Positions 1,234-32,062 of a stretch of 64,000 bases of DNA are shown here, in pieces (positions within the stretch are counted from its first letter, which is position 1; each line of letters starts with the position of its first letter). The DNA is taken from positions 1 through 64,000 of the forward strand of contig MCFE01000098.1 in NCBI GenBank assembly GCA_002104905.1. Direction: 5' to 3'. The translations under genes were made by a program, and so were the position numbers. This DNA comes from Basidiobolus meristosporus CBS 931.73. Lineage: Eukaryota; Fungi; Basidiobolomycota. The notes below the pieces were generated by a model, which saw nothing but the letters and a program-made list of their open reading frames with translations, did no database searches and was not told where the DNA came from.

Positions 1234-1559
1234 AATTGTTGAATTCTTAATTTTGCTGAGGCACAATCTTAATTTTGTTGAGAAACACACTAAACCAAAA
1301 GGTTCAGTAATTTTTATTTATATTTTTCTGATCAAGTTGAATTAGTAAGTGCCAAGAGACTGGACTAATTGAAATCCGTTGGGGTGTTGATAGGTGCATA
1401 AGATAAATGAAAAGTTGCATCATTATTCAGCTGATGTCTTTGCAACTTCTAAGTGGTTGGATAGATCTCAGATGACTAATCCTTTGGAAAGGCTTAGAAG
1501 ATCAGTTGAGGATGTAATGACCACATGAAAATTGATCAGGTGTGACAGCTAAATATATC

Positions 1560-3400
1560 TTCTGAGAAGTGATAAATTGAACCATAACAGGGATTAGTTA
1601 TGTTTGTGTTATGGAAAATCAGTTAGGGTACTAGATTTTCTAACAGAGTGAAATTGGCTAAGTTTTAAATATTGATGTACAACACCAACCTAGATAATTA
1701 CCTGTATCTATTGCTGAATGAATTTAGTGTGCCATCCAGCTGGATACTAGTAAATGACTATCATGTCAAAGTGCACATTATTATCTGCTTTGGAGATACC
1801 CCAGCTATTGGCAAGATAGCCAGCTTTTCTGGGCATCATGGACAGTATTGCTGTTGAATCTGCAAGATCTAGTGGATTTACTCCATAATCCACATTATTA
1901 TGATCCAGACACCAATACTGAGGGCATCATCTTCTCACAGAGAGGATGTACAGAAGTCAGCATGCAAATACAGCAAAGCTGGCAGGCTGTAATTCATTGG
2001 CCACAATATGGATTTAATCAAAAATTGGTGATACTCAAGATAGTGGAAATCTGTTTGAACAAAAGCTGCACACTGGAAGTAATGCATTTGCACTCCAACA
2101 ATATCTCTACACTAATGACCAAGTGGTACATGGGGCATCTCAACTTAAGTGAGCCCTGTGAGATACTGGAAAATTTTGAAAGAGTTGGCAAGATACTATA
2201 TAACATCCGCTACCCAAAGTATTTCTTACAAGCTCTAATCAATATTCATAAAAATATGCAACAATACAAATGCAAGGACTGGACAAACTAGATATGTATT
2301 TATTCAAGTGGCCTTCTGAAGCCACTTCTACCAAGAGTACAGTGGAAGCATTGGGAGTTATTTGTTGACATTATAGAAGTATTTATTCAGAAGCAGATCA
2401 CCAATGCCAATCTGGTGCATCTACCACTTTTATGCAAGGAGCTTGTGATAGGATTTGAGTGGCTATACAACAAGCATAAAGCTGAATACAAGAATCTCTG
2501 TCACTACTGCATGCATTCTCTGCTCCATCTTGTTTAGTGTGTGGAGAATATTGTGCCTTGCTTCATCTTTTGGGAAATCCCAATGAAGCAGATGTGTGTG
2601 GAGATAGGAAGACAAGTTAAGTTGCAAGTACCACTATATCCCAATCACCTCAAAAATATTACCTTTGAACCCATCAGGGATGTGACAAGTTGGCATATGG
2701 AGGACAGCCAGGAAGAGTTGGAAGATACTGAGGACAGATGGGCACATGGAGACACCTATGCCTTTGGCTTTAAGAAGCTAAGCAGCCTCAATATGTTGGT
2801 AATCAGTCAAGTAATGCAAAGTTGGATTGGACACAACAAGCAACTAACACTTATTGGAACAACTTTACCAATTAAGCCAGGTTTCTCCTGGGTACAAGCC
2901 AATTCCTACACCATGCAATACAGACCTCATACAAACAAGAACTAGAGAGTACCTACAAGGGGGACTAGAGTCCAGTAGGGAGAAGGAATATATTGGCTAT
3001 ATGCCAAAAAGTATTTTGCAGATATTCAGAAGGTATTTATGGCAAAAGTGGTGGCAACCATGCATATGTTTCTAAGATGAATATGTTACCAGCAATACAA
3101 GGTATATAGCAACTTTGCAAGTATCACATGGAAAAGCTGTAAAGCTGAGGTGATAGCAGTGTGTCAATTGCAATATGGTAACATTATACAGTACTAGCTG
3201 TAGGCTGCTGTACTGCTATTATAATGCTAACAGATGTCCACATCAAGGCTCTAGGAATGCTGTCAGGTTTTCTTCCATATATGGCAATTGAATGTACTGG
3301 CTGGTCATGTTTGCTCAAACAAGTGTAGGCAGCAATAAGAACAATAAAATACCATTGAAATCCAATCAAAGCACTGTCAAAACACCATCAATTTTATTTA
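1560..3400 (+). mobile_element. Decayed CACTA/EnSpm-like (Transposase_21/Tnp2) DNA transposon relic; boundaries approximate
   Basis: Broken ORFs include VKVHIIICFGDTPAIGKIASFSGHHGQYCC, VMHLHSNN and FWEIPMKQMCVEIGRQVK. Positions 2281-2480 are homologous to the reverse complement of 62790-62970. Many stops and frameshifts. Confidence 0.75.
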
Positions 3401-3823
3401 CCTATTTAGCAGTAAAATCAGCAAAACACTGTCACAATCCCATAGTAAGATTGTAAAGAGGGTTAGTATTTCCAAGCTGCTGGTATTATGATGGCCTCTT
3501 TGTGGGATCTTGATGGCTGATCTGGACTGGACCCACCCATGTGAATACATTATTTTTAATATGGAGCAGAATATCATGATAACATCAGTAGAATTTTAGC
3601 TTTTCTAAGCTTATTGCTCTCTGGAACTTGGGTTTGTGCTGTTTGGCACACAAGAAGACAAGCTTTTAAGGGGACTAAAAAACTTGGTAAAATGCTACTC
3701 ACTACTTTCACAATAATTTACAATCAAAAATCTGAAGAAAAAATACCTGATGAATGCCAGCCTAAGGCTAGGGAAACAGTAGAGTTCAAGTACATCCTAT
3801 AGACTTGCACATCTCCAGATATC

Positions 3824-4080
3824 TGTTAAGTCATAACTTGGCTACTTTATTTTGAGTTATTGAAATAAATATATCACCACTAGGTGATTGGCATCCCCCC
3901 TAACCCTAATGTGCGCAAAGGTTGGGGGCTTTTGGACATCTCAGAGTATTATCATGTTCTAGTTGTTTGACATTTTGGTGAAAATATCTGTAGTCCTAAC
4001 AAATATAGCAAGGCTCATAAGCAATGTTCAAAGTGACCAAGTCAATAGAATATTTATGTGTAAATACAAGGTTTACAATA
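3824..4080. repeat. Strongly diverged solo LTR related to the copia LTRs at 46-53 kb
   Basis: atgtgcgcaaaggttgggggcttttggaca...tcatgttct...attttggtgaaaatat...tttacaata aligns loosely with the copia LTR core gtgtgcaaagtttggggctgtttggaca...tcatgttct...attttggtgaaaatat...tttacaaca. Confidence 0.5.
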
Positions 4081-4406
4081 TTTCCCTTGTGATCAAATAC
4101 CAAATACACCCTCGAGTAGTATTCTCCCTTAGGTTATTGCCGCTGCTTTGGCTGCACAAAAAGCGTAGATTCCCCATTAAAAAGTGTGCGGCAGTTGGAT
4201 AGCCTTGTTCTTTAATATAGACCGCATTGTCTGTCATCTACAGTTATTACACAACAAGCGTATTCTGGGAAGTTACACTCTTTTTCCCGTGTTTTCACTC
4301 ATCAGTCCATCAACAGATTTTGGTACAATCAACCCCTATGGAGGGTTGATAGGTATGTACAAGGCTGCATCCATGATCATTCAGATTTGAAATCGCTTCT
4401 CTCATC

Positions 4407-5915
4407 TTATCGTCGCTTCATCTTGTAGGTGATGATTGGTTTAAGCTTAGCCACGACCTGTACAAGTCCAAAATGAACCAGATCATGCACAATGTCGTCG
4501 ATTTCCTTGTAAGCATCCTGATGCTCTTCTACCAGCAGATCAGCATCATCACATACAACGGCACTCTGAAATGGTGTGGCCAGCAACAATTCATTCAACG
4601 CAGAAGTAGATGAGCACTTTGCTTGATACTTTTCCCGGATCTTAGAAACCGCCTTTCCTCTTTGGAGCTTGCGACCTGCACCATGCGCTAGGCTATACCC
4701 GCTTTCGAGATGGGTCTCAGGGGATATGGGCAGGACCAAGTACGAATAGGCACCACGAGAGCCAGGTATCACAACCAGACCTTCGTCTGAGGGTGCGGCT
4801 CCTTTCCTGTGGAGCCAGACATTGTCTTGCTCGATTTGAAGGCCCTCCTTCCTACTCACTCGATTATGCCAAACATCTAGAATTTGGGTGCTTTCTTCCA
4901 GAGCAATGCCGATGCTAGTTAGGAATCGACGAGCAATTAGCTTGCGATTTGCATTGGCCCAATCACAGGCATAATCATGATGCTTAAGATAGGCAATCCC
5001 CTGAGCGCTGGAAACATGAACTCCATCCTTTGCATTGTTTTCCTCCTTAAAGGCTTCCAGTACCTTCTGTCCCAGCAAACGAGAGCCGCTATGTACCAGA
5101 AGGAGAGCTTTTTCCGTGTTGAAAGAAGACACGATATCTGCACCATACCATTCCTCGATCATTAGCAACTCGGCGAAATGATTACCGCCACCTATTGTCC
5201 CGATTTGCTTATTGATCTCGTCGTTCTCGGTAAAACGCTTATCAACCTCAGCGAAATGCGGAATGCTTTCACAATAACGTTGCCACGCGTTGTCGTCCGA
5301 TCCTGACTCCCCTTTCCAAACCCCTTCCATTGAGATAAGCCGTTTCTTGACTTTCTCTGGATGGAACGATTGGGATTCGACGGGCAACTGATACAACGAC
5401 ATGCCACACCCTATATCATTTCCAACGAGTGCAGGATAAATAACATCTCCATGGGAGAGAAATGAGACGCCGATCGGGAACTGGTTACCAGGATGGAGAT
5501 CAGGCATACCAACAGCAAGAAAAATATTTTCGAATATTTTTGCGGTATTTTCCATTTGCTTAATGGCGTCTTCGTGAATATAGCTGTCTTTTGCGATCAC
5601 GTTAGTCCTAGAATTGTTCATTTCGGAGGGCCCTTTCGTGATGGTTGTACCGACAAAGTCCTCTCCCCTGGAAATGAAGATTTCCAAACTTTCAACCGGT
5701 GTTTCCAGAAGCGAGCCGAACTCGGTTTCTGTGACTTCAAAAGCGGTGTTTTTTCCTTGGCTGACGAAGTAGCGCTTGGGATTCTTGATTTTCAACTTGT
5801 TCTTTGCTATTCTCCGAATCTCTTCAAGGAGATTTGCCGAAGCATCGATTAGTCCGAGCGTTTTCTGCTTCTGGTTACTATTGGCTGTTAGAGTGATACG
5901 CACTTTAGTTACCAT
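4407..5915 (-). CDS. rtcB: RtcB-family RNA 3'-phosphate/2',3'-cyclic-phosphate ligase, RtcB2 (release-factor-H-coupled) subtype, 502 aa, single exon, with an N-terminal extra domain
   Basis: All RtcB catalytic motifs are intact: GMPDLHPG, YPALVGNDIGCG, GGGNHFAE, HSGSR, WLHRKGA, IPGSRG, SLAHGAGR (nucleophilic His), EE...AYK and LKP. First ATG at 5915 (the track ORF starts at an upstream TTG); TAA at 4407. Confidence 0.93.
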   Translation of the reverse strand: MVTKVRITLTANSNQKQKTLGLIDASANLLEEIRRIAKNKLKIKNPKRYFVSQGKNTAFEVTETEFGSLLETPVESLEIFISRGEDFVGTTITKGPSEMNNSRTNVIAKDSYIHEDAIKQMENTAKIFENIFLAVGMPDLHPGNQFPIGVSFLSHGDVIYPALVGNDIGCGMSLYQLPVESQSFHPEKVKKRLISMEGVWKGESGSDDNAWQRYCESIPHFAEVDKRFTENDEINKQIGTIGGGNHFAELLMIEEWYGADIVSSFNTEKALLLVHSGSRLLGQKVLEAFKEENNAKDGVHVSSAQGIAYLKHHDYACDWANANRKLIARRFLTSIGIALEESTQILDVWHNRVSRKEGLQIEQDNVWLHRKGAAPSDEGLVVIPGSRGAYSYLVLPISPETHLESGYSLAHGAGRKLQRGKAVSKIREKYQAKCSSTSALNELLLATPFQSAVVCDDADLLVEEHQDAYKEIDDIVHDLVHFGLVQVVAKLKPIITYKMKRR

Positions 5916-6271
5916 AGTGACTGACAGCAAAAAGGCGAGGACAGAAAGTCACGAAGGGGATTTTCATGGCTTATATAATTTTGTGGTTGGCTAAATGCAT
6001 GTTGGCTCAGTCAGGGATTCGCTTCAATGCGGAAAAAATGAAACCCGACTACATGAACTAGATTGAGAGAAGAAATCCATATTGCGGTGGCTACGGACGT
6101 TGTGGGGGAAAGCAACCATCACTAGCATTGATTATGATTCGCCGACAATGATACATGTTTCTAGAATAACATATATGTAATGATCGCTTCCAAGCCACCA
6201 TCTCAGGAATTCAGTAGACAAAAGATTCGCGTCTGCTCGTTCAGTAGAAGATTAATCGCTGAGTGTATCAG

Positions 6272-6875: not shown

Positions 6876-9672
6876 CTACAACCAAGTCCTGAAGAACCAA
6901 ATGTAAACTGATTTGATAAGCTGGGTGAGCAGGCAATAGGCAAGCAAGGTGGCAAATAGATAAGGATAATACATCCCTGGCAGAGTCACCATCTCGAGTG
7001 ACTCCTTGAGTGGGGTAAATGGGATGAGAAAGCCAATGGCCATTATAGCCACCGTAGAAAGGAGCAAGGGAAGGGAGGCGCGACTCTGAATGAACGGAAT
7101 TAGCGGAGTCCGGATCATATGGACGATCAAGGTCTGTGTCAGTAAGCCGATCACAAAGCAACCCGTTTGGAACAGGGACTGATCATCGGTGGCGGTGGCA
7201 CCGAAGTAGAACCACATATAAATGTAGGTTGTGATATCAAAGATCGATGAAATTGGCCCGATGAAGAGCATGAACATCAAGACCCCCTTCGCTGACCAGG
7301 ACCGAGGTTTCATCAAGAAGTCTTGGTCCATCCTGTCCCACGGGATGGCAATCTGAGAGACATCGTAAAGCAAGTTCTGCACCAGGATCTGGATTGGCAG
7401 CATAGGAAGGAAGGGAAGCCAGATCGAGGCAACCAGCATACTGAACACATTACCAAAGTTCGAGGACACCGCCATCTTGATGTATTTGATGGTATTGCCG
7501 TAGGTAATCCGTCCCCGAATCACTCCGTCTACCAGCACCATCAAATCCTTCTCTAGCAAGATAATGTCTGCGGACTCCTTGGCGATATCAGTGCCGGTAT
7601 CCACCGATATCCCACAATCACTCTCACGCAAAGCTGGCGCGTCATTGATACCGTCTCCAAGGAATCCCACAACATGTCCCTTGCTTTTCAATGCCCGAAT
7701 CACTTGGGCCTTCTGAAGCGGCGTGAGTTTGGCGAATATGGTGGCCTCCTCGACGATTTCTGTGAACCGCTCATCACTTTCGTTCTCGAGGTCGCTGGTG
7801 GTCACAACGGAGTTGACTGGAAGCTTAATTTCTTGGCACACCTTACGGCAAACTGCCGCTGCATCCCCAGTCAATACCTTGATGGTCACGCCGTATTCAC
7901 GTAGCTCGTTGATTGCTAGCGAGGTGCTTGGCTTGGGAGGGTCAAGGAAGGCAATGTACCCGGCGAACACCATTTGTGTTTCTTGGGCAGCCGTGATATT
8001 TTTGTAGTCTCTGTCCAAAGCACGATAAGCAACAGCTATCACTCGGAGACCATCCTTGTTCAACTCATTGTTCAAGCTCTGCAACCGTTTCCGACAGTCG
8101 TCAGTGAGGTCAATGGTGCCATCGGTAGGTGGAGAGATGCCCCTCGGTGTGGGCCTAGGACTAGGGAGACTGCCGACAAATACCTTGGAGCAAGAGGCCA
8201 ACATCTCGTCGACTGCTCCCTTGGTGATAAGCAGATGATCCATATTGGATCGGTCTCTAATTACCACTGACATTTTGCGCCGGACAAAATCAAACGGGAT
8301 CTCATCTACTTTGAAATACTCACCCAACTCGAGACTAGGGTTGTTGTTGTAGAACTCTATTACGGCAAAGTCTAGCAGGTTCTTTAGGCCGGTTTGGAAG
8401 TAAGAGTTCAGGAACGCTAGCTCCAGAGGGAGGATGCAGGACTCACCACTACTGTTTAGGTGCCTCACAAGGGAAACCTTATCCTCAGTCAGGGTGCCGG
8501 TTTTGTCGGTGCAAAGTACATCGATTGCCCCCAGATTCACGATAGAATCCAGTTTCTTGACGATGCATTTCTTCTTTGAAAGTGCCATTGCTCCCCGAGC
8601 CAGGTTTGCGTTGACAATCATCGGCAGCATTTCCGGGGTCAATCCCACAGCAATCGATGCTGCAAAAAGGGCGGCCTGAAGCCAATCGTGTTTGGTAAAG
8701 CCGGAGAAAACAAAGACCAACGGTAGCATGATAAGCATGATTGCGATAAACAAGTAGCTGATCCTGCGAATCCCTTTTTGGAAGGCGTTGATTGGACGCT
8801 GAGAACTCAGCTGCTTGGCCATAGCGCCAAATAGAGTGTTGGGCCCGATGGCCTTCACAACCCCAGTGGCCGTCCCACTGACCACACTCGTTCCCATGAA
8901 GCACATGTCCACATCTCCATTGGAATTGGATGGGAGGATGAATCCGTGGGCGGACTTCTCAACTGGCATGGCCTCGCCGGTTAGTGAGGCTTGGGAGATG
9001 AAAAGATCCTTCGATAGGATTAGCTGCAAATCGGCAGGGACCAGGTCACCGGCCCTCAATTTGATCCAGTCTCCAGGAACAATCTCTTCGAATGGAACTT
9101 CGTACTCGGCAACATCTCCGCGCTCCACCTTCTGCAAGTCCTCGTGAAGAGGGTCTCTAGTATCAGGGGGAGCGTACTTGCGGATGACGGTGCATTTGTT
9201 ATTGACCAGATCCTTCAAACTCTGCGCGGCGATTTCCGACTTGAACTCCTGCACAGAGCGAAGGGCAACGCTCAGAATGACCATGACGATCATGATGATG
9301 GTCGTTTTGGCTTCGCCGGTTGCGCCGGAGAAGATGGCCAAAACGGTCAGAAGAATATTGAAGGGGTGAATCAGTGCGTTCAGCACAATCCTATACCATT
9401 TGACCGGTTCGCTTCCCACCACGGCATTTTTGCCATGTCTGCTTTGGATATTTTCAATCTCGCCCCACGGAAGCGGGTGGACGGGATGACCGGAGAGCTC
9501 ACCCACCGTGTACTCGGCCATGGAGTAGATCTCGGGGACAAGAATGACGTTTGCCTTAGACTTGGATGGCATTTTTCTCTGCAGGGTAGGTCAATTAGCC
9601 GAAAGTAGTTTCACCAGAACAATTATCGCTTGGTAGAACAGACAATACTTGGGTAGAATATGCTGTTTCCAT
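6876..9672 (-). CDS. mgtA: Magnesium-translocating P-type ATPase (MgtA/MgtB, P3B type), about 900 aa; main exon 9578-6876, probable 8-codon first exon 9672-9649
   Basis: Motifs DKTGTLT (phospho-Asp), LTGEAMP, GLTPEMLPMIV (P3B-typical), KVLTGD, GDGINDAPAL and PMLPIQILVQNLLYD. An in-frame GT..gctaat..CAG intron at 9648-9579 would join METAYSTQ to RKMPSKS; the alternative start is ATG 9572. Confidence 0.92.
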
Positions 9673-10788: not shown

Positions 10789-12353
10789 CTATCGTTTCAG
10801 AAACTCCAAAAGAGTAGCCATCATTTCCACCTGACGTTCTTGTATTTCGATCTTCTTCTCCCTGTGTCGCTCTCTACGCTCCATCTTCTGTTTCAAATAT
10901 TCCATACGGTCTTGATGCTTTCTTCGTAAAAAGTTCAGATACTCTTCGGATTGTTGAAACTGGAAAAATTCACATGCATGTTCTTCGGGGAACTTGCGCT
11001 TTTCCGATCTGAGAGGGGCTGGACTTTCGTGAGGTGACGCGTACGACGCTTCACTCATGTGGGAATCGTTTGGAATGTGCTCCACAGAATCTAGGCTTGG
11101 GTGGGGGTTGGCTTGTGAGCTGGTCACCGATGCTGCCGTAATCCCATGTCCAGTGGTTGGGAATCCACGCGAGTTAACTTCATTGTCGGGAAATGGTGAC
11201 ATGCTCGCGTCACCGTAATTGACCTGAACAGAATGGCTAGGATTCTCAGAAATCCCGCCAACACTTGAAACTGGCGTATTTGGAGTTGGAGTCCCAGTAG
11301 AGACATTTATCCCAGGCGTGCCGTTTGTTGTGTTGAAGTGCACAGCCTGCCCATTACCAAGTATCTGCTGAGAAACCGATGTAGAGGGTTGGCTATATTG
11401 TTGTGGTTGATGTGCTTGCTGTTGTTGCTGCTGCTGTTGTTGTTGCATAGTATGTTGCATATTTTGCTGTTGTACTTGCTGGGCCTGCTGATGAGCGAGC
11501 TGCTGAAGCTGTTGCTGCTGGATCTGGTGCATTTGAGAGGCTGGCGTCTGAGGATGAACTTGCTGAGGCTGACCATTTGCATCAAATGCTACGCTCAATT
11601 GCTCGGTGGGAGTGCAGCTTTGAGATACGGTGGGTGAACCGGCATCATTCTGGAGAGGCATACCGTTGGAGTCAACGGCATGGTTTCTCATAGCAACAGG
11701 AACAGAAGCACGATGCACCCTGATGGCGTTCATATCTTCGAAATAGTCGTCAGTTTTCTTGGAATTCCCTGGCTGGCTGTTATGTTGGAGGATTTCCTAA
11801 AATTTGGTGGAAACCGTGAGCCAACTGTAGAGCATACGATGTGACAAGCACCAGTAGTGCTGTTAGCGTACCTTATATTTACGTTCTAACGTTTTCCATC
11901 GATTTCGACACTGCTCTGCCGAACGATTAAATCCTGCTTCCAGCATTTTTCGATGAAGTCTTTCCCAGACCGAAGCGTTTCTCTTCATGCTTTCGAAATA
12001 TTCGCGGTGCTCGCCATAGAGTTTGATCAAGTGCTTGGTTTCATCATGTCTCCAGTTTTCACTGTATCTGGAAGTGCCCTTTACTGGGGAAGGGCTTTTG
12101 TCTACACAGGGAATGTCAAAGTTCATAAAGTTATATGGATAGCCCAGGCTAATGATGGAAAAAGAAAGTTCGCCTTACCAAAGCCAGGGATGTTGGAAGT
12201 GTTGCTAGCTGGAAGTCCATCGGTAGTGGTATTGATGTTAGGGTGGGTTTGATTCTGGAGGACAAGATTATGGGGAGCTCCCGAAAGAGCGTTGGCTATT
12301 GTACCCGACACATTCGGGATCTGTGTATAAAGAGTGGAGGAAGTAGAACTCAT
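10789..12353 (-). CDS. Trihelix/Myb-SANT-like DNA-binding protein (Myb_DNA-bind_4 type) with a poly-Q region and a C-terminal coiled coil; 3 exons (12353-12179, 12101-11872, 11796-10789)
   Basis: NWRHDETKHLI...VWERLHRKM...RSAEQCRNRWKTLERKYK, spliced to EILQHN...DYFEDM. Canonical GT-AG introns keep the frame. Confidence 0.85.
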
Positions 12354-17768: not shown

Positions 17769-20700
17769 ATGGAGGATGATACACAAGGAGTTGCTACTCC
17801 CATCGACTCCCTCTCCCAGCTCTTTGACCCAAGCGTATTCAAGGAATACTTGGAGAAGCTTTTGCCTCTAGTCCTCGCTGCTGATCCCGAGGACATTGAG
17901 AGCTCGCTATTTGCTTACCCGGATTCTCTGGAAAAGTGCCGTCGCTTTGCCAATGATCCACAAAATTCTGTACTCTATGTATTAAAAGAGCGCGAAGCTA
18001 GAAAAGACGACGGTACTTATCACTTCTACAGCCTCGTTGTTACCTTCAGTCAGCTAATCTACTTTAACAGCTGACGACCATTCTAGCTATAGCTACACAT
18101 ATTCCCTTTCCCACGAGATAACTTATTTACCTAATCATGTTGCTTCTCTGGCCTTAATCAAACGTTCGCCAACACTGGACGCACTCCGTCCTCTGCAGAA
18201 CCAACTCCAGCTTATCAACCTTCCTGGACCTGCATCCACCGATAACACCACTGGTGCTGCTACCCCCTACGAGGCTCTTCACGCATACATCCATCATGCC
18301 GTAAGCCCATTCTTCAACGCTTACGTTAGCTCCAAGGAGGCTTCGAGCGAAGGCACTGCCAGCGCAGGTGGAAAGCGCGAGGACAAAGATAGCAAAATGG
18401 GTACTTAACAGCGCTTTGGTATAATCCATCAGTCCTTGATAATAACCAAATCATTCACTACCAAGGCATCCCCATGACCAAAAAGAAGATCGCCGAGCTG
18501 GAGTTGTCCTTGCTCCACTTGCAACAGAACGTCGAGATCCCCGAAATCTCCCTGAACATCCACCCTGCCGTTCAACGGGCTGTGGAGAAGGTAAAGGGCC
18601 GTTTAGCAACTTTCCCAGTGCACTGTGTCTGACATTCTCGACTTTAGTGCCGTGAGCTGCGTCAGCGTATTACCGTCGACGCCGTCGATCCCAGCCTTCT
18701 TTCGGATTCTTCCTTTTTGAACCGTCTGCAAGGCGATGTGAATGGATGGATCAAGGAGATTCAGAAAGTGACCAAGCTTTCCAGAGATCCGGCCAATGGT
18801 ACTGCCTCTCAGGAAATCAATTTCTGGATCAGCATGGAGCGAGCCCTTGAGAAGATCGAAGAGCAGCTTAAAAGCGATCAGATCGGTAGGCCATTGTTGT
18901 GCAGTTGTTGTTGAAGTACACGGGTCGCTAATCAAAGCATCTAGTTTTAACCTTGGAGGTTCTCAAGAACGCCAAGAGATTCCACGCCACGGTTAGTTTC
19001 ATTGCCGACACGGGCTTGAAAGAGGGGACGGAGAAAGTCTTGAAGTACAACCAGCTGATGAAGGACTTCCCCTTGAACGAATTGCTTTCCGCAACTGACG
19101 TGGAAAAAGTCCGGGACTCCCTTGTCCTTATCTTTGGCCATTTAAACAAGAAGCTGAAGCTTTCACCATATCCTATCCGCCGAGCACTCCCTTTCGTCGA
19201 GGCGATCTCCAGAGATCTCAACGACCAGCTGCTCAAAGTCCTCGGAAGCCGTAGGTTGATGTACATGGATTACGAGGACTTCGAGAAGATTACCGACGGT
19301 GCTGACGAGGTGTTCCGCACGTGGGACGATTTGATTAAGGAGTTCACTAATGTCGCCAGAGAGGTGACTCGTAAGCGTGCCGAGAAGTTCATGCCAATCA
19401 AGATCAACCCGGCCCACGCTAAACTGCAAGAACGGGTGAACTTCGTTCGCAACTTCAGAAAGCAGCATGAACAACTACACAACACCATTGTGCGTGTGAT
19501 GAGCGCTTCAACCAACTCCAGGCCCATGGTCGTGAGTGGTAGTGTGATCGAGATGACCCCACAGGAGAGCGTGAGTGTGAGCGACATCAATTCGGTTGAG
19601 GAGGTCAAGCTTGCCTACGAGAGCGTGAAGAACATCGATGTTCTTGACGTTTCCCCTGAGGGAACCGAGATGTGGGTTAGCGCAGAAAACTCCTACAACG
19701 AGCGCGTATCCCGGGTAGAAAACCAAATCATTGCTCGCCTTCGCGACAAACTTGGTACCGCCAAGAACGCCAACGAGATGTTCCGCGTGTTCTCGAAATT
19801 CAACGCACTCTTCGTGCGTCCCAAGATCCGTGGTGCCATCCAAGAATATCAAACGCAGCTCATCGACAGCGTAAAGGAGGATATCAAAAAGCTTCATGAC
19901 AAATTCAAGATGCAATACCGCAACTCCGAAGCGTACCATATGAGCGGGCTCAGAGATCTGCCACCGATTTCCGGTGCCATCATCTGGGCACGCCAGATCG
20001 AGCGCCAACTCTCCACCTACATGAAGCGAGTGGAGGATGTCTTGGGTAAAGGGTGGGAGCTGTACGCCGAAGGTCAGAAGCTTCAAAGCGAAAGCAACAG
20101 TTTCCGAAAGAAGCTGGATACTCGACAAATCTATGATGCTTGGCTATCGGAAATTGCCAAACGTGACTTGTCGGTGTCGGGACGAATCTTCGAGATCTCC
20201 CGTGTCCGTGCCCAAGGAAACATCCTACAGTTGGGGGTGAACTTCGATAGTCAGGTGATCACCCTGTTCAAGGAGGTGCGAAACCTTCTCTGGCAGGGAT
20301 TCCAGGTCCCTCACAGTGTTAGCAACATCGCCAAAGATGCCAAAAGGGTTTATCCGTTTGTTGTCAGTCTGATGGAGACTGTGAGGACTTACCAGCAAAC
20401 CCTCAACAAAATCCATAAGCATCCGGACATCGCCACCTTGGTCGCCGGTTATCGCAATGATGTCCAGGTGATGATCACCAAGGGAATCAACCTTCGCTGG
20501 GATTACTTTGTGAACACCTACGACGCCCACCACCGTCCGCTTACCTATACGGCGGGGGCAGCGCTGGACGCCCGCGAGAACCGTCATGTGATGTTCGTTC
20601 GTGAGTTCGCCAATATAGTTTCCGTGTTCCAAGACAAGGTGGATTCGCTGATCATGGTCAACGATGAGATTGTCCAGGCGATTGAGGAGTTGAAGACCTG

Positions 20701-23700
20701 CTCTTACCAATCGGACAAGTTCGCCGACTGTCTTGAGAAGATGCAGAAGTTAATCGACAGGCTGAACCTCGAATCCTACTCCAACTTGGATGAGTGGGTC
20801 GCTCAGCTTGACTCACGTGTGGAAGGAGTTTTGGCGGTCCGACTACAGCAGGCCATCAAAGAGTGGATCGAAGAGTTCCTCCTCATAGATGAGGAAAGCG
20901 CCAGCTCCTTGAGCAAGCTTGCGACCAAGAAGAACAAGCGCAAGGGCTGGATGGATCTGGACGAGGAGGAAGGGGCCAAGGTGCGCGACGAGAAGACCCG
21001 TCCCAACCTGCGCATCTTGATCCATGAGATCCGAATTCGCAACCAAGTGATGTATCTCGACCCACCTCTTGAGCAGGCCCGCGCTAGCTGGTACACCCAG
21101 CTGCATGACTGGCTTGCGGTGGTCTGTTACTTGAAGAGGATTCAGAGTTCTCGCTACGAGATTGGCCTGCACGTCAAGAGTGAATCATCACTTGATATCA
21201 CTTACACCAATCTTCTTACCAAGCTCACCGAGAACACTCTCGACAAGGCGTACGAGATCATCGAGCAAAAGGTGAAGGAGGTCAACGATTACGTCAACAT
21301 CTGGCTGCAATACCAGTCGCTCTGGGATCTCGAGTCGAGCTATGTGTACTCGAAGCTTGGAGAGGACCTGAACAAGTGGCAGCAGATCCTTCTCGAGATC
21401 AAAAAGGCCCGAAACACATTCGACAACTCGGAGACCGACAAGTCATTTGGCCCACTGATCATTGACTACGAACAGGTCCAGAGCAAGGTCAACGCCAAGT
21501 ACGATTCTTGGCAACGAGAGATCCTCAACAAGTTCGGAAGTATGCTGGGTACAAGCATGCGGGACTTCCATACCGCCGTCTCCAAAGCCAGATATGACTT
21601 GGAGCAGCATTCCATCGACTCGAATACCACCAGCGAGACCGTCACGTTCATTACGTTTATTCAGGATCTGAAGCGTAAGGTCAACAAATGGAACAAAGAT
21701 GTCGAGCTTTACCGCCAAGGCCAGAAAACCCTTGAGCGCCAAAGATACCAGTTCCCAACCGAATGGCTGTACGTGGATCAGATCGAGGGTGAGTGGAGTG
21801 CTTTCAATGAAATCCTCACTCGTAAGAACAACGCTATCCAGGAGCAGATTGCTGGCCTCCAGATGAAGATTGTCGCGGAAGACAAGGTGGTGGAGCAAAA
21901 GATCAAGGACATTGTTGGCGAGTGGGAGAAGAACAAGCCCGTGCAGGGAGATATCAAGCCTGACATTGCCACCAACACGCTTAATATCTTCGAAGGACGG
22001 GTCACCCGAGTGAAGGAGGAGTATGACCAAGTTTGTCGCGCAAAGGAGGCGCTTGATTTGGACCTCACCACTGACGATCGTTTGGACCCAGTTCTTGAAG
22101 AGTTGCGTGACCTCAAGTCCGTTTGGTCCGCCCTTTCCAAGGTCTGGCAGTCGATTTATGAAATCAAGGATACCGTGTGGACCTTGGTTGTTCCCCGTAA
22201 GATTCGCCAACAGTTGGATGCTTTGCTGAACTCCACCAAGGAGATGCCAAACCGTATGCGTCAATACGCCGCCTTTGAATATATCCAGGAAACGCTGAGA
22301 CAATACCTGAAAGTCAATCCGCTTCTTGGGGATCTGAAATCCGAGGCGCTCCGTGAAAGACACTGGAAGCAGCTGTTCAAGCTCCTCCGCGTCGAAGGGC
22401 GTCTTGGCCTTTCGGAGATGACTATCGGGAATCTATGGGATTTGGACCTTCGCAAGAACGAGCAAGTTGTCCGCGAAGTGATTACAGTTGCCCAAGGTGA
22501 GATGGCCCTTGAGGAATTCTTGAAGCAGGTGAGAGAGACCTGGACCAACTATGTCCTGGAGCTGGTCAACTATCAAAACAAGTGTCGTCTCATTAAGGGC
22601 TGGGACGAGCTTTTTGGTAAATGCAGTGAGCACCTGAATTCCCTCACCGCCATGAAGCTGTCCCCTTACTACAAGGTCTTTGAAGAGGAGGCATCCGGCT
22701 GGGAGGAGAAGCTGAACAGAGTTCACGTGCTATTTGATGTTTGGATCGACGTGCAACGTCAATGGGTTTACCTGGAGGGGATCTTCACCGGAAGCGTGGA
22801 CATCAAGCATCTTCTACCCATCGAATCCTCCCGTTTCCAGAACATCAACTCCGAGTTCTTGACCGTGATGAAGAAGGTCTACAAATCTCCGTTTGTCCTC
22901 GATGTCCTGAACATCCAGAACATCCAGAAATCCCTGGAGCGCTTGGCCGATTTGTTGGGCAAGATTCAAAAAGCTCTTGGTGAATACCTTGAGCGGGAGA
23001 GATCTTCGTTCCCTCGTTTCTACTTCGTCGGCGACGAAGATCTCCTGGAGATCATTGGCAACAGCAAGGATGTGCTGCGCATACAGAAGCACTTCAAGAA
23101 GATGTTCGCGGGCATCTCCAACATTATCCTGAACGAAGACACCACCGTGATTCAAGGAATGGCTTCACGTGAAGGGGAGGAGGTTTACTTCAAGAACCCA
23201 GTTTCGATCAAGGACCATCCCAAGATCAACGACTGGCTAACCTTGCTCGAGAAGGAGATGAAGGTCTCGTTGGCACTGTTGCTTTCTGACGCGGTGACCG
23301 AGATGAACGACATCTACTACACCGAAGAGCTTGATCGCACAGCCTTCCTGGATTGGATTGAGAAATACCCAGCCCAGCTTGTGGTTCTTGCCGCCCAAGT
23401 CACCTGGTCTCAGTCCGTTGACAAGGCTTTAAGCACCATCGGGGAGCAGAACAACGGGGACTTTACTCCCATCAATGACTCGCTCGGATTAGTGGAGCGT
23501 AACCTGAACGTTCTCGCCGATGCAGTTCTTTCGGATTTGCAGCCTATCAAGCGTAGGAAGTGTGAACATCTCATCACCGAGTTGGTTCACCAAAGAGATG
23601 TCATTCGTTTGTTGATTTCCAACCGGGTGTGCTCCGCGAAGGACTTCGACTGGCTTTACCAGATGCGGTTCTACTTCAACGGAAGCGTCGAGGACCCGCT

Positions 23701-26700
23701 GCACCGACTCAGCATCCAGATGGCCAACGCATCCTTCTACTATGGCTACGAATATCTAGGCGTGCCTGACCGCCTGGTTCAAACTCCGCTGACCGATCGT
23801 TGCTACCTTACACTCACCCAGGCCTTGGAGGCTCGACTTGGCGGATCGCCGTTCGGACCAGCCGGTACCGGAAAAACCGAATCCGTGAAGGCCCTTGGCG
23901 TGCAGCTGGGCCGATTCGTGTTGGTCTTCTGCTGTGATGAGAACTTCGATTTCCAGGCCATGGGCAGAATCTTCATTGGTCTATGCCAGGTTGGCGCCTG
24001 GGGCTGTTTCGATGAGTTCAATCGTCTGGAGGAGCGCATTCTCAGTGCGGTGTCGCAGCAGGTGCAGACCATCCAGACCGGCCTGAAGGAGGCAATGACC
24101 AATCCAAACCTGGAGATTGACATCGTCGGCCGCAACGTCAAGGTCAACTCGGACACCGGTATCTTCATCACCATGAATCCTGGCTATGCTGGGAGATCCA
24201 ATCTCCCCGACAATTTGAAGAAGCTGTTCCGCAGCATCGCCATGACGAAACCTGATCGGGAGCTTATTGCCCAGGTGATGCTCTACTCGCAGGGCTTCCG
24301 TACGGCGGAATTGCTGGCGTCCAAGGTGGTCCCCTTGTTCAACCTCTGCGCGGAGCAGCTCTCGCCTCAGTCGCATTACGATTTCGGCCTTCGTGCGTTG
24401 AAGAGTGTGTTGGTCAGCGCAGGTAACCTCAAGCGTGATCGACTACAGTCCGTGCGGCTCATCATCCAGGAGCAGGGTGGTGAAGAGACCAATTTCGAGC
24501 AAATCTCCGAGGGCTTGCCCGAGCAGGAGATTTTGATCCAGAGCATCCGTGAGACGATGGTCCCGAAGCTGGTTGCCGATGATATTCCTCTCCTCCGAAG
24601 CTTGCTGGCCGACGTATTCCCCGGCGTCGATTATGTCCCGGTGGACCTGGATCGTCTCAAGGCCGAGATCCAAAAGGTGTGTGCGGAACGCCGTCTGGTG
24701 CCGGGCGAGATGTGGCTCGAGAAGGTTCTGCAGCTCTACCAAATCCAAAACATCCATCACGGCCTGATGATGGTTGGCCCTTCTGGCAGCGGCAAATCCA
24801 TGGCCTGGCAGGTACTCCTCCAAGCGTTAGAGAGAGTGGAGGGCGTCGAGGGGGTGGACTACGTTATTGATCCCAAGGCCATCTCGAAGGACGCTTTGTA
24901 TGGCACCCTCGACGCTACAACTCGTGAATGGACCGATGGTTTGTTCACCCACATCCTCAGAAAGATCGTGGATAACGTCCGTGGCGAAAGCGCCAAGCGC
25001 CACTGGATCATATTCGATGGCGATGTTGACCCGGAGTGGGTTGAGAATCTTAACAGTGTGCTGGATGACAATCGACTCTTGACACTGCCAAACGGCGAAC
25101 GTCTAGGCTTGCCCCCTAACGTCCGTATCATGTTCGAGGTGGAAACCCTGAAGTACGCCACTCTTGCTACGGTGAGTAGATGCGGTATGGTCTGGTTCAG
25201 TGAAGATGTCGTTACTCTTCCCATGCTCTTCTCCAATTACATCGAGACTCTGAAGGAGGTTGCTCTGGATGACACCGAGGAAGAAACGTTCACCAGAAGG
25301 ACCGAATCCGAGGAGAACAACTCTGAGTCCCCGAACATGGTCACTCAAGCCTCTTGCGCCAATATCATGGCCCCCTACTTCAACGAAGATGGCCTGGTCA
25401 CGAAATCCGTCGAGCATGCTGCCACGCTGGAGCACATCATGGATTTCACCCGTATGCGTGTCCTCAACACCTTGTTCTCCCTGTTGAACAAGACCGTCCG
25501 CAACATCCTGGAGTACAACTCGCAGCACCCTGACTTCCCGATGGGCATTGATCATATGGAGAATTACATCTCGAAGCGTATGGTCTACAGTGTGATTTGG
25601 AGTTTCTCTGGCGATGCCAAACTTAACCTTAGAACGGAGCTTGGCGAATTTGTGCGTGGCATCACCACCATCGACCTCCCTGCCCTCGCCCCTGGCATGT
25701 CGATCATTGACTTCGATGTCACCCTCAACACCGGTGACTGGACACCATGGCAATCCAAGGTGCCCGTCATCGAGATCGAGACGCACACTGTTGCCGAGGC
25801 CGATGTGGTGATTCCAACTGTCGACACTGTTCGACATGAGGACGTTTTGTACTCTTGGCTGTCCGAGCACAAGCCGTTGATTTTATGCGGTCCACCCGGT
25901 TCAGGTAAGACCATGACGTTGTTCAGTGCGCTGCGCAAGCTCCCCGACATGGAGGTGGTCGGACTTAACTTCTCCAGCGCCACCACTCCCGAATTGATCC
26001 TGAAGACGTTCGAGCAGCATTGCGAGTACAGGAAGACGCCCAACGGCGTGATCCTGTCGCCGATCTTGATCGGGAAATGGCTGGTCGTCTTCTGCGACGA
26101 GATCAATCTTCCCGCCACCGACAAGTACGGAACCCAGCGAGTGATCTCGTTCATCCGACAACTCATCGAGTACGGCGGCTTCTGGAGAGCTTCTGACAAG
26201 GCGTGGGTCAAACTGGAGCGCATCCAATTCGTCGGCGCCTGTAACCCCCCAACTGACCCTGGTCGTGTGCCAATGACCCACAGATTCCTGAGACACGCAC
26301 CCTTGGTGATGGTCGATTACCCTGGAGAGCTTTCGCTGAATCAGATCTACGGCACCTTCAGCAGAGCAATGCTGAAGGTGGTCCCCAACCTTAGAGCATA
26401 CTCGGAGCCCCTCACGGCCGCGATGGTAGAGTTCTACCTGCTCTCACAAAGCCACTTCACCCCCGACATGCAAGCCCATTACATCTACTCTCCTCGTGAG
26501 TTGACCCGTTGGATGCGTGGTATCTTCGAGGCAATCAAGCCTATGGAGGAGCTGAATGTCGAAGGACTGGTCCGCATCTGGGCCCACGAAGCCCTTCGTC
26601 TCTTCCAGGATCGTTTGGTGACTGAGGAGGAGCGCCAGTGGACCGACGAGAAGATCGATGAGATTGCCATGAAGCATTTCACCAGCATCGATCAGGAGGA

Positions 26701-29700
26701 GGCCTTGAGCCGACCCATCCTTTTCTCCAACTGGCTGTCCAAGCACTACGTCCCCGTGAAGCGGGAGGAACTGCGGGACTACGCCAAGGCTCGACTGAAG
26801 GTATTCTACGAGGAAGAGCTGGACGTGCCATTGGTACTGTTCAACGATGTGCTGGACCATGTTCTTCGGATCGATCGTGTGTTCCGCCAAATGCAAGGCC
26901 ACCTGCTTCTTATCGGTGTGAGCGGTAGTGGTAAAACCACGCTGTCCAGATTTGTCGCCTGGATGAATGGCTTGAGCGTGTTCCAGATCAAGGCGCACAA
27001 CAAGTACACCGGCGCCGATTTCGACGAGGACCTTCGAACGGTGCTACGCCGCGCCGGTTGCAAGGGGGAGAAGATCTGCTTCATCATGGACGAGTCCAAC
27101 GTCCTTGACTCGGGCTTCCTCGAGAGAATGAATACGCTGTTGGCGAACGCAGAGGTTCCTGGCCTCTTCGAAGGCGACGAACACGCCTCCCTGATGACCC
27201 AATGTAAGGAGGGGGCCCAGCGGGAAGGACTCATGCTTGACTCTAGCGATGAGCTCTACAAATGGTTCACCCAACAAGTGATGAAGAACCTTCACGTGGT
27301 GTTCACCATGAATCCACCCGAAGGCGGACTTGCCTCCCGTGCCGCCACCTCGCCTGCCCTCTTCAATCGATGCGTATTGGACTGGTTCGGTGATTGGTCC
27401 GACCAGGCCTTCTTCCAAGTAGGCAAGGAATTCACCCAGAACCTGGATCTGGACGTTCCTTCCTACGCGGCACCCTCCGAGATCCAGATCGCCTATCGTG
27501 ATCTGCCTCTACCTCCTAGCCACCGGGACGCTATCGTCAACGCGTTCGTCTTCGTTCACCTGTCTCTCTACGAGGTCAATGCCAAATTGAGCAAGCGCCA
27601 GGGACGTCACAACTACGTCACCCCCCGACACTACCTCGACTTCATCAACCACTACGTGAAGCTCTTCAACGAGAAGCGGGAAGACCTGGAAGAGCAGCAG
27701 CGCCATTTGAACATCGGTCTCGAGAAGCTCCGTGATACCGTGGTCAAGGTGGACCAGCTTCGTAAGAGCCTCGCCCTCAAGAAAACCGAGCTCGAGGCCA
27801 AGAATGCCCAGGCCAACGAGAAACTCAAGAAGATGGTGGCCGACCAACAAGAGGCGGAGAAGAAGAAGGCCGCCTCCATCGAGATCCAGGCGGCCTTGGC
27901 GGTGCAGAACAAAGAGATCGAGGAGCGTCGCGCCATTGTCATGACCGACCTGGAGAATGCCGAGCCGGCCGTTCTCGAAGCACAGAAGAGTGTCAGCAAC
28001 ATAAAGAAGCAGCATCTGACGGAAGTTCGTTCCATGGGCAATCCCCCCAAGCACGTCAAGATGGCCATGGAGTCGGTCTGCATCCTCCTCGGCCACAAGA
28101 TCGACAGCTGGAAGACCGTGCAGAGCATCATCCGTAGGGACGATTTCATTTCCAGCATTGTCAACTACAATACCGAGAAGCAGCTTACCCGTGCTCTGCG
28201 CGAGAAGATGAAGCGTGAATTCATCGAGAAGGACCCCGACTACAACTTCGAGCGAGTGAACCAAGCCTCGAAGGCCTGTGGACCGTTGGTCAAGTGGGCG
28301 ATCGCCCAAGTCAACTACTCCGGGATCCTGGACAGAGTCGGCCCACTGCGCAACGAGGTGATCGAGCTTGAGAGAAGCGCCGAGGAAACCAAGGAGAAGG
28401 CCTCGTCCATCGAGAAGATGATCGAGGAGCTGGAGAATAGCATCGCCACCTACAAGGAGGAGTATGCCATCCTCATCAGCGAAACCCAGGCGATCAAGAC
28501 CGAGATGGAGAGAGTGAAGTCCAAGGTGGAGCGCTCCCTCACTCTGCTGGACAGTCTCTCGTCGGAGAAAGAGCGTTGGGAACAGGGAAGCCAGACATTC
28601 GAAACCCAGATGGGAACCATCGTCGGAGACGTACTCTTGTCGTCGGCCTTCCTGGCCTATGGCGGTTACTTCGATCAGCAGTATCGTGAGATCCTGTTCC
28701 AGAAGTGGACCAACCATCTGGTCCGTTCCAGCATCCAGTTCAAGCACGACATCTCCTTGACCGAATACCTGTCTACGGCCGACGAGCGTCTGGCCTGGCA
28801 AGCGAACTCGCTCCCTGCGGACGACCTCTGCATCGAGAACGCCATCATGCTCAAGCGGTTCGACCGCTACCCGTTGATCATCGATCCCTCCGGTCAAGCG
28901 ACCAGCTTCTTGATGAACGAGTACAAGGACCGTAAGATCGCCGTGACCAGCTTCTTGGACGACGCCTTCCTCAAGAACCTGGAGAGCGCCCTTCGATTCG
29001 GTAACCCGTTGCTCATCCAGGATGTGGAGAACCTGGACCCCATCCTCAACCCGGTGCTGAACAAAGAGCTTCGTCGCACGGGCGGTCGTGTGCTGATCCG
29101 CTTGGGCGGACAGGATATCGATTTCTCCCCCGCGTTCACCTTGTTCCTGTCGACCCGCGACCCCTCGGTCAATTTCCCTCCCGACGTGTGCAGCAGAGTC
29201 ACCTTTGTCAACTTCACCGTCACCCGGGGAAGTCTGCAGAGCCAGTGCCTGAACAAGGTTCTCAAGGCCGAGAGACCGGATGTCGATCAAAAGAGAACCG
29301 ACCTCGTGAAACTCCAAGGGGAGTTCCGCCTGAAGCTCCGTCACCTCGAGAAGTCCCTACTTCAAGCGCTCAGCGAGTCCAAGGGCAACATCCTGGACGA
29401 CGACAACGTCATCACCACCCTCGAGACCCTCAAGAGAGAGGCGGCCGAGGTCACCCGCAAGGTGGAGGAGACGGACACCATCATGCAAGAGGTGGAGGAT
29501 GTCACCACCGTGTACACCCCGCTCGCCCAAGCGTGCAGCTCGATCTTCTTCGTGATGGAGCAGCTCAACCAACTTCACCACTTCTACCAGTTCTCCCTCG
29601 ATTTCTTCTACGAGATCTTCAACTACGTCCTCTCGGTGAATCCCAACCTCAAGGGGGTGACCGACCACGACCAGAGACTCGAGATCCTGACCAGGGATCT

Positions 29701-32062
29701 GTTCACCATCGCATTCCGTCGCGCCTCACGGGCCCTGCTCCATGAGGATCACATCACCTTCGCCATGCTGATGTCCCAGATCAAGAACCGTGGCACTGCG
29801 AATCAGCTCGATGAAGGGGAGTACGACTTCCTTCTCAGCGGAGGCGACATCGTGCCCGGGGTCAACGTGACCAGCTCCGACCTGGGCATCCCGGAGGGTC
29901 TGTTGGACGACGAGAGAATGATCCGCATCAAGCAGTACGCAACCCTTCCTTGCTTCAAGGCCCTTCTCGCCCACATGGCCAACAACGAGGGCCAGTGGCG
30001 AGAGTTCTTGAACTCGGGCGCACCTGAGAAGGAGGTGCCGGTGGTGTGGGAGTCCGAGGGCGAGAAGGCTCCACCAAGCATCGACCTCTTCCGCAAGATG
30101 TTGCTCGTCAAGTGCCTTCGTCCTGATCGCCTGCTCCCGGCCGCCTCCGCCTACATCGAGTCGGTGTTCGGGCCCGCCTTCCTGGGCCAGACCGATCTGA
30201 ATTTCAAGAGCCTCGTCGTGGAAGAGATCAGCTCCGCCACGCCCATCTCCCTGTGCTCGGTTCCTGGCTACGACGCAAGTTACCGCGTGGACAACCTTGC
30301 CGCCGAGATGAACTCCAAGTGCACCTCCGTGGCCATGGGCTCCCAGGAAGGGTTCAGCCTCGCGGACCAGGCGATCGCCGGCGCCGTCAAGACCGGAAAC
30401 TGGGTTCTGCTCAAGAACGTCCACCTCGCGCCCCAATGGTTGGCCCAGCTCGAGAAGAGGCTGCACAACATGAAGCCCAACAAGAGCTTCCGGTTGTTCC
30501 TAACCATGGAGACGAACCCGAAGGTCCCGGTGAACCTGCTGAGAATGTCCCGAGTGCTGATGTTCGAACCCCCGCCGGGCATCAAGGCCAACCTCCTCGA
30601 GTCCCTTTCGAACATCCCCCCTGCGAGACTGAACAAGGGACCCAACGAGCGGGTCCGACTCTACTTCCTGCTAGCCTGGCTCCACGCCATCGTCCAGGAG
30701 CGGTTGCGCTACGTCCCATTGGGCTGGACGAAGATCTACGAGTTCAACGACTCCGACCAGGACTGCGCGCTGAACACGATCGACCGCTGGCTGGACGTGG
30801 TGGCCCAGGGCCGGTCGAACCTTTCCCCCGAGAAGATCCCCTGGGACGCGATCAAGACCCTGATCACGCAGTCGGTGTACGGCGGTCGGATCGACAACGA
30901 GTTCGACCAACGTCTCCTCGAGTCCTTCGTGGACTCCCTGTTCACCGCCTCCAGCTACGACCTCGACTTCGACCTGGTGGCGGCCAGCAAGGACGGCGGG
31001 GAGAAGCTGGTCATCCCGGAGGGGACCAAGATCGAGCATTTCCTGAACTGGATCAACTCCCTACCCGAACGGGAGCCTCCCTCCTGGCTTGGGCTGCCGA
31101 GCAACGCGGAGCGCGTCCTCATGATCGCCAAGGGGAACTCGTTGCTCACGAAGGTCCGCAAGATGAAGAACCTCTCGGAGGACGACGAGGTGGTGTTCAC
31201 CGGGGAGTCCTCCACCCAGAGCGAGTCGAACGCCCAGCCCGCGTGGATGAGGTCGATCTACCAGTCGGTGCAGAACTGGCTCCAGGCGCTGCCGGAGTCC
31301 CTCTCGAAGATCACCCGCACCCCGGACAGCATCAAGGACCCACTGTTCCGGGTGTTCGAGCGGGAGATCCAGAGCGGGCACAAGCTGCTCCTCAAGGTCC
31401 GACAAGACCTCAAGGACCTCGAGCAGGTCTGCCGAGGGGAGCTCAAGCAGACGAACCACCTGAGAATGCTGCTGAGCTGCCTCACGAAGGGGATGATCCC
31501 CGACCACTGGCGTCGCTACAAGGTCCCCAAGAACATCTCCCTGAACCACTGGATCGCCGACCTCACCGTGCGTCTGAACCAGCTGGAGGAGATCGCGAAC
31601 GCGACCACCTACCGGAACCGGGAGATCTGGATCGGGGGACTGTTCATCCCGGAGGCGTTCATCACCGCCACCCGACAGGCGGTCGCCCAGACGAACTCCT
31701 GGTCGCTCGAGGAGCTGAGCCTCGAGTTGGACATCGGGGTGACCTCGAGCGAGGACCCGAACGCCTTCACCGCCACCGGGCTCAAGCTGGAGGGGGCGGA
31801 GTGGGAGGCGGACGCGGACGCGGAGTCGGAGTCGGAGTCGGGCGGCCTAAGACTGAGCGCCCTCCCCACCACCAAGCTCAACCCCTCCCAGATCCGGTGG
31901 ATCAAGAAGGCCGACGTCCAGTCCCGGGATCACCAGGTCCCCCTCCCCGTGTACCTCAACGGGGACAGAAGCGACCTGCTGTTCACCGCGTACGTCAACG
32001 CGGACGTCGCCCAGTCGAACATCATCTCCCAACGGGGAGTCGCCATCGTCACCACCTTCTAG
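17769..32062 (+). CDS. DYN1: Cytoplasmic dynein 1 heavy chain; exons 17769-18012, 18071-18400, 18466-18590, 18648-18885, 18945-32062
   Basis: 4369-aa open frame with four P-loops ([32 protein letters not shown]), linker [15 protein letters not shown], a stalk coiled coil and a full C-sequence. Four canonical introns near the 5' end. Confidence 0.98.

Follow-up and report, generated by a model that had tools for sequence, protein, structure and literature searches.

An RtcB2-type RNA ligase gene with an added N-terminal beta-grasp domain in the fungus Basidiobolus meristosporus

The ligase gene and its two domains

The DNA analyzed here, referred to as the window, comprised 64,000 nucleotides of Basidiobolus meristosporus CBS 931.73 (contig MCFE01000098.1, positions 1 to 64,000 of the forward strand; assembly GCA_002104905.1), and its minus strand carries a gene for an RNA ligase of the RtcB2 type. 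The listing of open reading frames (ORFs) gave a single open frame at 4407..5930 (minus strand), whose first ATG at 5915 yields 502 amino acids (aa) and a stop codon. The resulting coding sequence (4407..5915, minus strand) is complete and intronless and encodes a doublecortin (DCX)-like domain followed by the RtcB2-type ligase, as concluded from the ORF, direct reading, matches to Pfam and NCBIfam, and alignment with full-length homologues. The ATG at 5915 was favored as the start codon because homologues share the same start position; those of many eukaryotes begin there with M-P-S-[IV]-R-[LI]-T-L, and the first residues of the window protein are M-V-T-K-V-R-I-T-L.

The public gene call for this locus (P0001) is 404 aa long and 100% identical to the window protein, with a coverage of 80%. 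This protein begins with MNNSRTN, at Met99 of the longer frame (5619..5621, minus strand), and the conserved N-terminal domain is missing from it (window positions 5619-5915, minus strand, are left out). The 502-aa model should replace the public 404-aa model, and if the annotated protein were expressed, the enzyme under test would be a truncated one.

The ligase domain itself, of the type that joins 3'-phosphate to 5'-hydroxyl (5'-OH) RNA ends, occupies residues 102-502 (4410..5612, minus strand) and is acidic (pI about 6). It was recognized by the NCBIfam model TIGR03073 (release_rtcB) over residues 107-493, by Foldseek and by its identity to RtcB2 of Escherichia coli. The score on TIGR03073 was 334.5 bits, above the cut-off of 271.8 (E. 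coli RtcB2 reached 617.5), and the match to the Pfam family RtcB (PF01139) reached 208.9 bits (cut-off 27; E 2e-61). With rtcB from E. coli K-12 and the intact rtcB2-prfH pair from E. coli strain RM10466 as references, the window protein was 38% identical to RtcB2 over 403 residues (244 bits, E 7e-81) and 26% identical to RtcB1 (105 bits).

The catalytic residues were examined in an alignment of 67 eukaryotic and bacterial RtcB2 proteins, and their roles were taken from published RtcB structures. All 53 columns that are invariant in this alignment are kept by the window protein, among them D167, C170, H246 (in GGGNHF), H275, H350 and H411, which in addition line up with the motifs for metal binding and guanylylation in solved RtcBs. 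The metal ligands Asp167 and Cys170 lie in GNDIGCG (residues 165-171; 5403..5423, minus strand), which aligns with GFDINCG of the solved enzymes. SLAHGAGR (residues 408-415; 4671..4694, minus strand), in which S408, H411, G412, A413, G414 and R415 are invariant, aligns with their SCHGAGR, and His411 is the predicted guanylylation site. The motifs GMPDLHPG..PIG and HRKGAAP are present as well.

An AlphaFold2 model of the full protein (pLDDT 92.9, pTM 0.85) retrieved with Foldseek the GMP/Mn2+ complex of RtcB (4dwq; E 7.8e-29, TM 0.62-0.65) and human RTCB (8odp; E 1.5e-28). Judged by sequence and predicted structure, the gene encodes a complete RtcB2-type ligase with the same fold as RtcB, and this protein is very probably an active RNA ligase. 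A preliminary description of the locus had proposed an intact, single-exon frame of 502 aa that carries the RtcB motifs and belongs to the PrfH-coupled RtcB2 subfamily. Its exact coordinates were recovered by the ORF listing, the frame is uninterrupted over the whole coding sequence, every motif it quoted was found with the catalytic residues invariant, and the subfamily assignment agrees with the TIGR03073 score and with the identities to the two E. coli enzymes.

The same description overlooked the N-terminal domain, the only feature that distinguishes the eukaryotic RtcB2 form. Residues 1-95 (5631..5915, minus strand) form a basic beta-grasp domain of the doublecortin/KHA/PB1/CIDE-N type, recognized from its conservation, the profile matches of relatives, the structural model and a reverse profile search. 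It aligned over its full length with 48 homologues and conforms to a motif of ~85-100 residues, M-x-x-x-R-x-T-L..N..Q ... AKNKLRxK ... G.EL ... VS.GE..G. A domain of this kind (about 95 aa) was present in nearly all full-length eukaryotic RtcB2s sampled, its carriers coming from at least five eukaryotic supergroups, and in 0 bacterial members. On these comparisons it is a new element, which is conserved among eukaryotic members and which the public gene model lacks, and no paper describing an N-terminal domain of RtcB2 was found.

Residues 1-95 of the window protein gave no family match of their own, and none to DCX (PF03607), KHA (PF11834) or CIDE-N in Pfam. Unlike true members of these families, the domain thus falls below every Pfam threshold and only its relatives match weakly: among 49 N-terminal domains, Ubiquitin_DCDC1 (PF25510) was matched by 15 (best 1e-5), KHA by 13, DCX2_DCDC1 by 12 and CIDE-N by 7. 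The model of the domain (pLDDT 85.8) adopts a beta-grasp fold, for which VIA-align returned CIDE-N domains (Z 9.7 and 9.1), PB1 domains (Z 9.7, 9.2 and 8.2) and a doublecortin domain (Z 7.5), in agreement with Foldseek and the ESM Atlas. When 1.84 billion representatives were searched with a profile of the domain, 474 proteins came up at E up to 0.001; outside RtcB, the top matches were DCDC1-like proteins with several doublecortin repeats (E 1e-30 to 1e-19). The kinship of the window domain with DCX and KHA was consequently drawn from the fold and the reverse profile search and not from a Pfam match of its own. To our knowledge, no doublecortin/DCDC1, KHA, PB1 or CIDE-N domain is fused to an RNA ligase.

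The domain is basic throughout the family (median pI 9.3), with conserved R6, K18, K38, K40, K42 and K44. Such a predicted surface would suit RNA binding, the PB1/CIDE-N-like fold of the model would suit head-to-tail protein contacts, and the kinship with doublecortin raises tubulin binding as an option. The predicted complex of two copies scored 0.00, which speaks neither for nor against self-association, and an Atlas feature search with the domain, RtcB clusters excluded, gave no usable match. No additional Pfam domain turned up in ten longer homologues (540-744 aa). In the proteins P0298 and P0340, each about 930 aa long, an arrestin-like region (a weak match) and a histone deacetylase domain, respectively, precede the N-terminal domain and the RtcB2 part; these arrangements may reflect genuine fusions or gene models that were merged.

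Relatives and origin of the gene

The sequence search was headed by the gene call of the window itself, followed by proteins from metagenomes and the Logan read archive at 48-52% identity and then, among the matches listed, by eukaryotic relatives covering 99-100% of the query. Some of these relatives came from Mortierellomycota, many chytrids, Calcarisporiella, Basidiobolus ranarum, the basidiomycete Phenoliferia, Nuclearia, Capsaspora and bdelloid rotifers; others came from Selaginella, Bryopsis, Ostreobium, Naegleria, Willaertia, Acrasis, Arcella and Aplanochytrium. Bacterial RtcB2s (370-395 aa) covered only about 80% of the query. Within the ligase domain, identity reached 60% with eukaryotic relatives and 42-46% with bacterial RtcB2s. 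The contig of one relative (P0002) holds the eukaryotic genes Syf1, Coq4 and SCO1.

Trees were built on the columns of the ligase domain only, with a bacterial sample that consisted of the best matches of a eukaryotic query. One branch of the quick tree, with a support of 100, had all 36 bacterial rows on the same side; in the careful tree, the 25 bacterial rows, including E. coli RtcB2, formed one clade (25/25; support 100/99) that was recovered in 100% of the bootstrap trees. Within the RtcB2 tree, and well removed from E. coli RtcB1 (outgroup branch about 6.8), the window protein branched among eukaryotic sequences (chytrids, Mortierellomycota, Capsaspora, Naegleria, rotifers, Selaginella and green algae); it was grouped with P0003 at 100/88 within a clade of six members. 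In the quick trees this clade was sister to one comprising Mortierellomycota and B. ranarum (support 94-95). The split between bacteria and eukaryotes was used unrooted only; a root among long eukaryotic branches, obtained with E. coli RtcB1 as sole outgroup on its branch of about 6.8, was set aside as long-branch attraction.

Introns interrupt the related genes of Linnemannia and B. ranarum: tblastn matches to them are split, and the genes span about 250-310 nt more than their coding length. The B. ranarum gene (contig positions 8001-9750) is a different RtcB2 paralogue, 41% identical to that of the window, with at least two introns, and it nests within the Mortierellomycota clade. The tetranucleotide composition of its contig is Basidiobolus-like (r 0.80 to the window versus 0.43 to Linnemannia). 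An orthologue of the window ligase was not found in B. ranarum among the matches listed, although the neighboring ATPase gene has orthologues of 70-74% identity there.

The preliminary description had derived the gene from a bacterial transfer. As a private event of this lineage, such an origin is contradicted by nearest relatives that are eukaryotic, by the separate bacterial clade, by an N-terminal domain confined to eukaryotes across at least five supergroups, and by the introns of the Linnemannia and B. ranarum relatives. These features imply that any bacterial origin was ancient and shared, or that the gene spread between eukaryotes. The sequence data rule out a recent private transfer from bacteria and fit a single old acquisition, with later losses, spread between eukaryotes, or both. 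The integrity of the gene, its subfamily, fold and domain architecture, and its phylogenetic position were established.

Proposed function and its alternatives

From these features we infer the catalytic activity, the cellular location, the substrate and the role of the N-terminal domain. With moderate confidence, the protein is proposed to be a cytosolic GTP- and Mn2+-dependent RNA repair ligase, encoded by a long-resident gene and directed to its target by the N-terminal domain in place of PrfH. Mn2+ would be bound through Asp167, Cys170, His246, His275 and His350, and His411 would take GMP from GTP. GMP would then be passed to an RNA 3'-phosphate (or an opened 2',3'-cyclic phosphate), whereupon the 5'-OH end would attack and the break would be sealed. 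The ligase would act in the cytosol as a repair enzyme and not as a tRNA-splicing ligase. Its likeliest target would be a break in the small-subunit rRNA on free 40S subunits, as suggested by the example of E. coli RtcB2; that this rRNA is the main substrate is put forward only tentatively, as somewhat short of probable.

The E. coli RtcB2/PrfH system (PMC9304027, PMC9223846, PMC13166195) is the closest characterized one. Free 30S subunits whose 16S rRNA has been cleaved in the decoding centre are repaired by RtcB2 of E. coli, which repaired less than 2% of cleaved tRNAs; beforehand PrfH frees the peptide, and the 70S ribosome can then split (PMC9304027). The fungal protein belongs to the same subfamily and has the same catalytic residues and the HRKGA and SLAHGAGR motifs, so that the chemistry should match. 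It differs from the E. coli enzyme in the 95-residue beta-grasp domain added at its N-terminus, in being encoded by a single eukaryotic gene instead of a bacterial two-gene operon and, if the analogy holds, in acting on 40S instead of 30S subunits. Eukaryotic RtcB2s have been noted in print: 98 of them were counted, mostly in fungi and plants, and repair of the 40S subunit was predicted (Tian et al. 2022, PMC9304027, Discussion). The window gene belongs to this set, which was never characterized, and the ribosome-repair function advanced in the preliminary description was thus not new, having been published as this same prediction. The added N-terminal domain, the clean separation of the bacterial members and the introns are absent from the main text of PMC9304027. 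No paper linking Basidiobolus with RtcB was found.

As had been remarked before, no prfH is visible in the window: tblastn of bacterial PrfH against its 64 kb gave no match better than E 2.4, and the ligase gene is adjoined by an MgtA-type ATPase gene and non-coding DNA. PrfH has been found in bacteria only (PMC9304027). A protein search with bacterial PrfH returned only close bacterial relatives among the matches listed, a result that cannot show absence from eukaryotes. In Hyalangium (2945-5146) and in a genome labelled Comamonas sp. JC664 (1910-4158), an RtcB2-type gene follows rsfS, which encodes a ribosome silencing factor, and an rlmH-like gene for a SPOUT methyltransferase (Pfam RsfS and SPOUT_MTase), without prfH. 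These two myxobacterial-type loci constitute a second ribosome-linked context for the RtcB2 subfamily.

The family also occurs beside canonical RTCB. All animals keep RTCB according to published reviews, and the RtcB2 family is present in Capsaspora, where canonical RTCB is expressed, and in rotifers. Since both types coexist in Capsaspora and, by published accounts, in rotifers, a role of its own is suggested for the RtcB2 type, separate from tRNA splicing and not redundant with RTCB. This co-occurrence and the rsfS-rlmH context without prfH together hint at small-subunit rRNA as target.

In the proposed mechanism, the N-terminal domain would fill the role that coupling to PrfH in one operon plays in bacteria, with rRNA, the subunit or a partner protein as the docking site of the ligase. 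The specific version of this idea, in which the domain is the eukaryotic replacement for PrfH coupling and brings the ligase to damaged 40S subunits or to a partner in ribosome rescue, is speculative and on present grounds improbable. Were it correct, a dedicated rRNA-repair pathway would exist in early-diverging fungi and many protists, and decoding-centre ribotoxins directed against eukaryotes would exist and await discovery. How a damaged 80S ribosome is recognized without PrfH has been posed as a question (PMC9304027), and the domain offers a concrete handle on it. If the repair function holds, it would imply an unrecognized class of attacks on eukaryotic ribosomes.

Several points weigh against a ligase dedicated to ribosome repair. 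The identity of 38% to E. coli RtcB2, the sole characterized enzyme, is low enough for the substrate specificity to have drifted, and on the stricter equivalog model PRK09588 the window protein scored 388.9 bits, slightly below the cut-off of 407 (E. coli RtcB2, 642.5). Folds of the PB1 and CIDE-N kind serve mostly in contacts between proteins, DCX binds tubulin, and the N-terminal domain may be unrelated to the ribosome. Among known ribotoxins, none cuts eukaryotic ribosomes in the decoding centre (PMC9304027). Finally, Trl1 and human RTCB reseal rRNA breaks in vitro, and a dedicated enzyme is not strictly required (bioRxiv 10.64898/2026.05.26.727988).

In the main alternative, the protein is a general ligase for RNA breaks or tRNA repair, which would reseal tRNAs cut by anticodon nucleases or under stress, or mRNAs, or serve as a backup for Trl1, and which would not be tied to the small ribosomal subunit in particular. 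RtcB chemistry accepts any pair of 3'-phosphate and 5'-OH ends, the catalytic residues are intact in the window protein, and known yeast killer toxins cut tRNA. Eukaryotic tRNA ligases mend varied RNA breaks (bioRxiv 10.64898/2026.05.26.727988), and the lack of a known eukaryotic decoding-centre toxin (PMC9304027) counts on this side too. Nevertheless, the protein groups with RtcB2 and not with RtcB1, its E. coli counterpart mended less than 2% of cleaved tRNAs (PMC9304027), and organisms with canonical RTCB retain an RtcB2-type gene too. A general repair role is rated as unlikely, though it deserves serious attention.

Canonical RTCB/HSPC117 of archaea and animals (4dwq, 7p3b, 8odp) shares with the window ligase the fold (Foldseek E about 1e-28), the metal ligands and the mechanism through a guanylylated histidine, but with an identity of only 20-23% it belongs to a different subfamily, and no evidence places its partners archease, DDX1, FAM98 and CGI-99 with the window ligase. 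Trl1, the tRNA ligase of fungi and plants, which fungi use in splicing tRNA and HAC1, likewise joins 2',3'-cyclic-phosphate and 5'-OH ends, although with an unrelated fold and a three-step, ATP-dependent healing-and-sealing chemistry. In textbooks and recent reviews, the major fungal phyla are said to have given up RtcB for Trl1 (PMC13247085, PMC12699882).

It is much less probable that the gene, intact as it is, is unexpressed, is losing its function or has been co-opted, by way of its protein-interaction domain, for something other than ligation. Its long branch, with nearest relatives only 50-60% identical, and the different paralogue of B. ranarum could be read in this way, but 502 codons without a stop and the retention of 53 of 53 RtcB2-invariant positions in the 67-sequence alignment speak against it.

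Action in mitochondria had been considered in the preliminary description; a mitochondrial enzyme that repairs the bacterial-type small-subunit rRNA of mitoribosomes appears very improbable. The decoding centre of the mitoribosome is bacterial-like and some eukaryotic RtcB1-type proteins are mitochondrial (PMC12699882); however, the start is conserved across the family and the first residues of the window protein form strand 1 of a confidently folded domain. Because the protein opens with this first conserved beta-strand, the N-terminus enters the folded domain at once and no room is left for a presequence. Two non-RTCB1 clades of diplonemids are nuclear or cytoplasmic (PMC12699882), the match of either to the RtcB2 clade not being established. 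From the structured and conserved N-terminus we infer that the repair ligase proposed here is cytosolic or nuclear rather than mitochondrial.

A recent horizontal transfer from bacteria into Basidiobolus is scarcely credible: the genus is reputed for the uptake of bacterial genes, the ligase gene is intronless, the RtcB2 family is mostly bacterial and the adjoining gene encodes a bacterial-type MgtA ATPase and is intronless too, but the closest relatives are eukaryotic, the sampled bacteria form their separate clade (100/99), the protein carries the eukaryote-only N-terminal domain, the base composition of the gene resembles that of its neighbors and the MgtA ATPase is nearer to early-diverging fungi than to bacteria. 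Long residence in eukaryotes is supported by the introns of relatives, by a composition like that of the neighboring genes and by the fungal neighbors.

Genomic neighbourhood

Directly upstream of the ligase gene and on the same strand lies the intronless gene of this MgtA-type Mg2+ P-type ATPase (6876..9572, minus strand; 898 aa; TIGR01524, 1091 bits). It is 98% identical to a protein of B. meristosporus CBS 931.73. Its relatives were a B. meristosporus paralogue (82% identity) and proteins of B. ranarum (70-74%), Glomeromycotina (59-60%), Mortierellomycota (55-57%) and bacteria (51-53%), an order by which the ATPase is an old resident of early-diverging fungi and not a recent transfer. The possibility that the RtcB2 and MgtA genes form a recent transfer island was rejected, the ATPase being closest to early-diverging fungi ahead of bacteria. 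The public model of the ATPase is 861 aa long, against 898 aa for the open frame.

Shared neighbor genes were not found across the contexts of the ligase genes in Linnemannia, B. ranarum and one further fungal contig. The ligase gene has a GC content of 0.465 and a GC content at third codon positions (GC3) of 0.48, the GC3 of its neighbors being 0.46-0.76. At a distance of 13 kb, an uninterrupted frame of 4369 aa encodes a cytoplasmic dynein heavy chain (18953..32062, plus strand). With the dynein heavy chain and a Basidiobolus ATPase as neighbors and a composition within their range, the placement of the ligase in a fungal genome, already assumed in the preliminary description, is confirmed: it is a real fungal chromosomal gene and not contamination.

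An ORF of 314 aa without a Pfam match was also found (10789..11733, minus strand). The dynein heavy chain gene stands out by a GC3 of 0.76, versus 0.46-0.63 for its neighbors, and the gene-rich part of the window is flanked by long AT-rich stretches at 1-4000 and 42000-54000 (GC 0.37-0.39).

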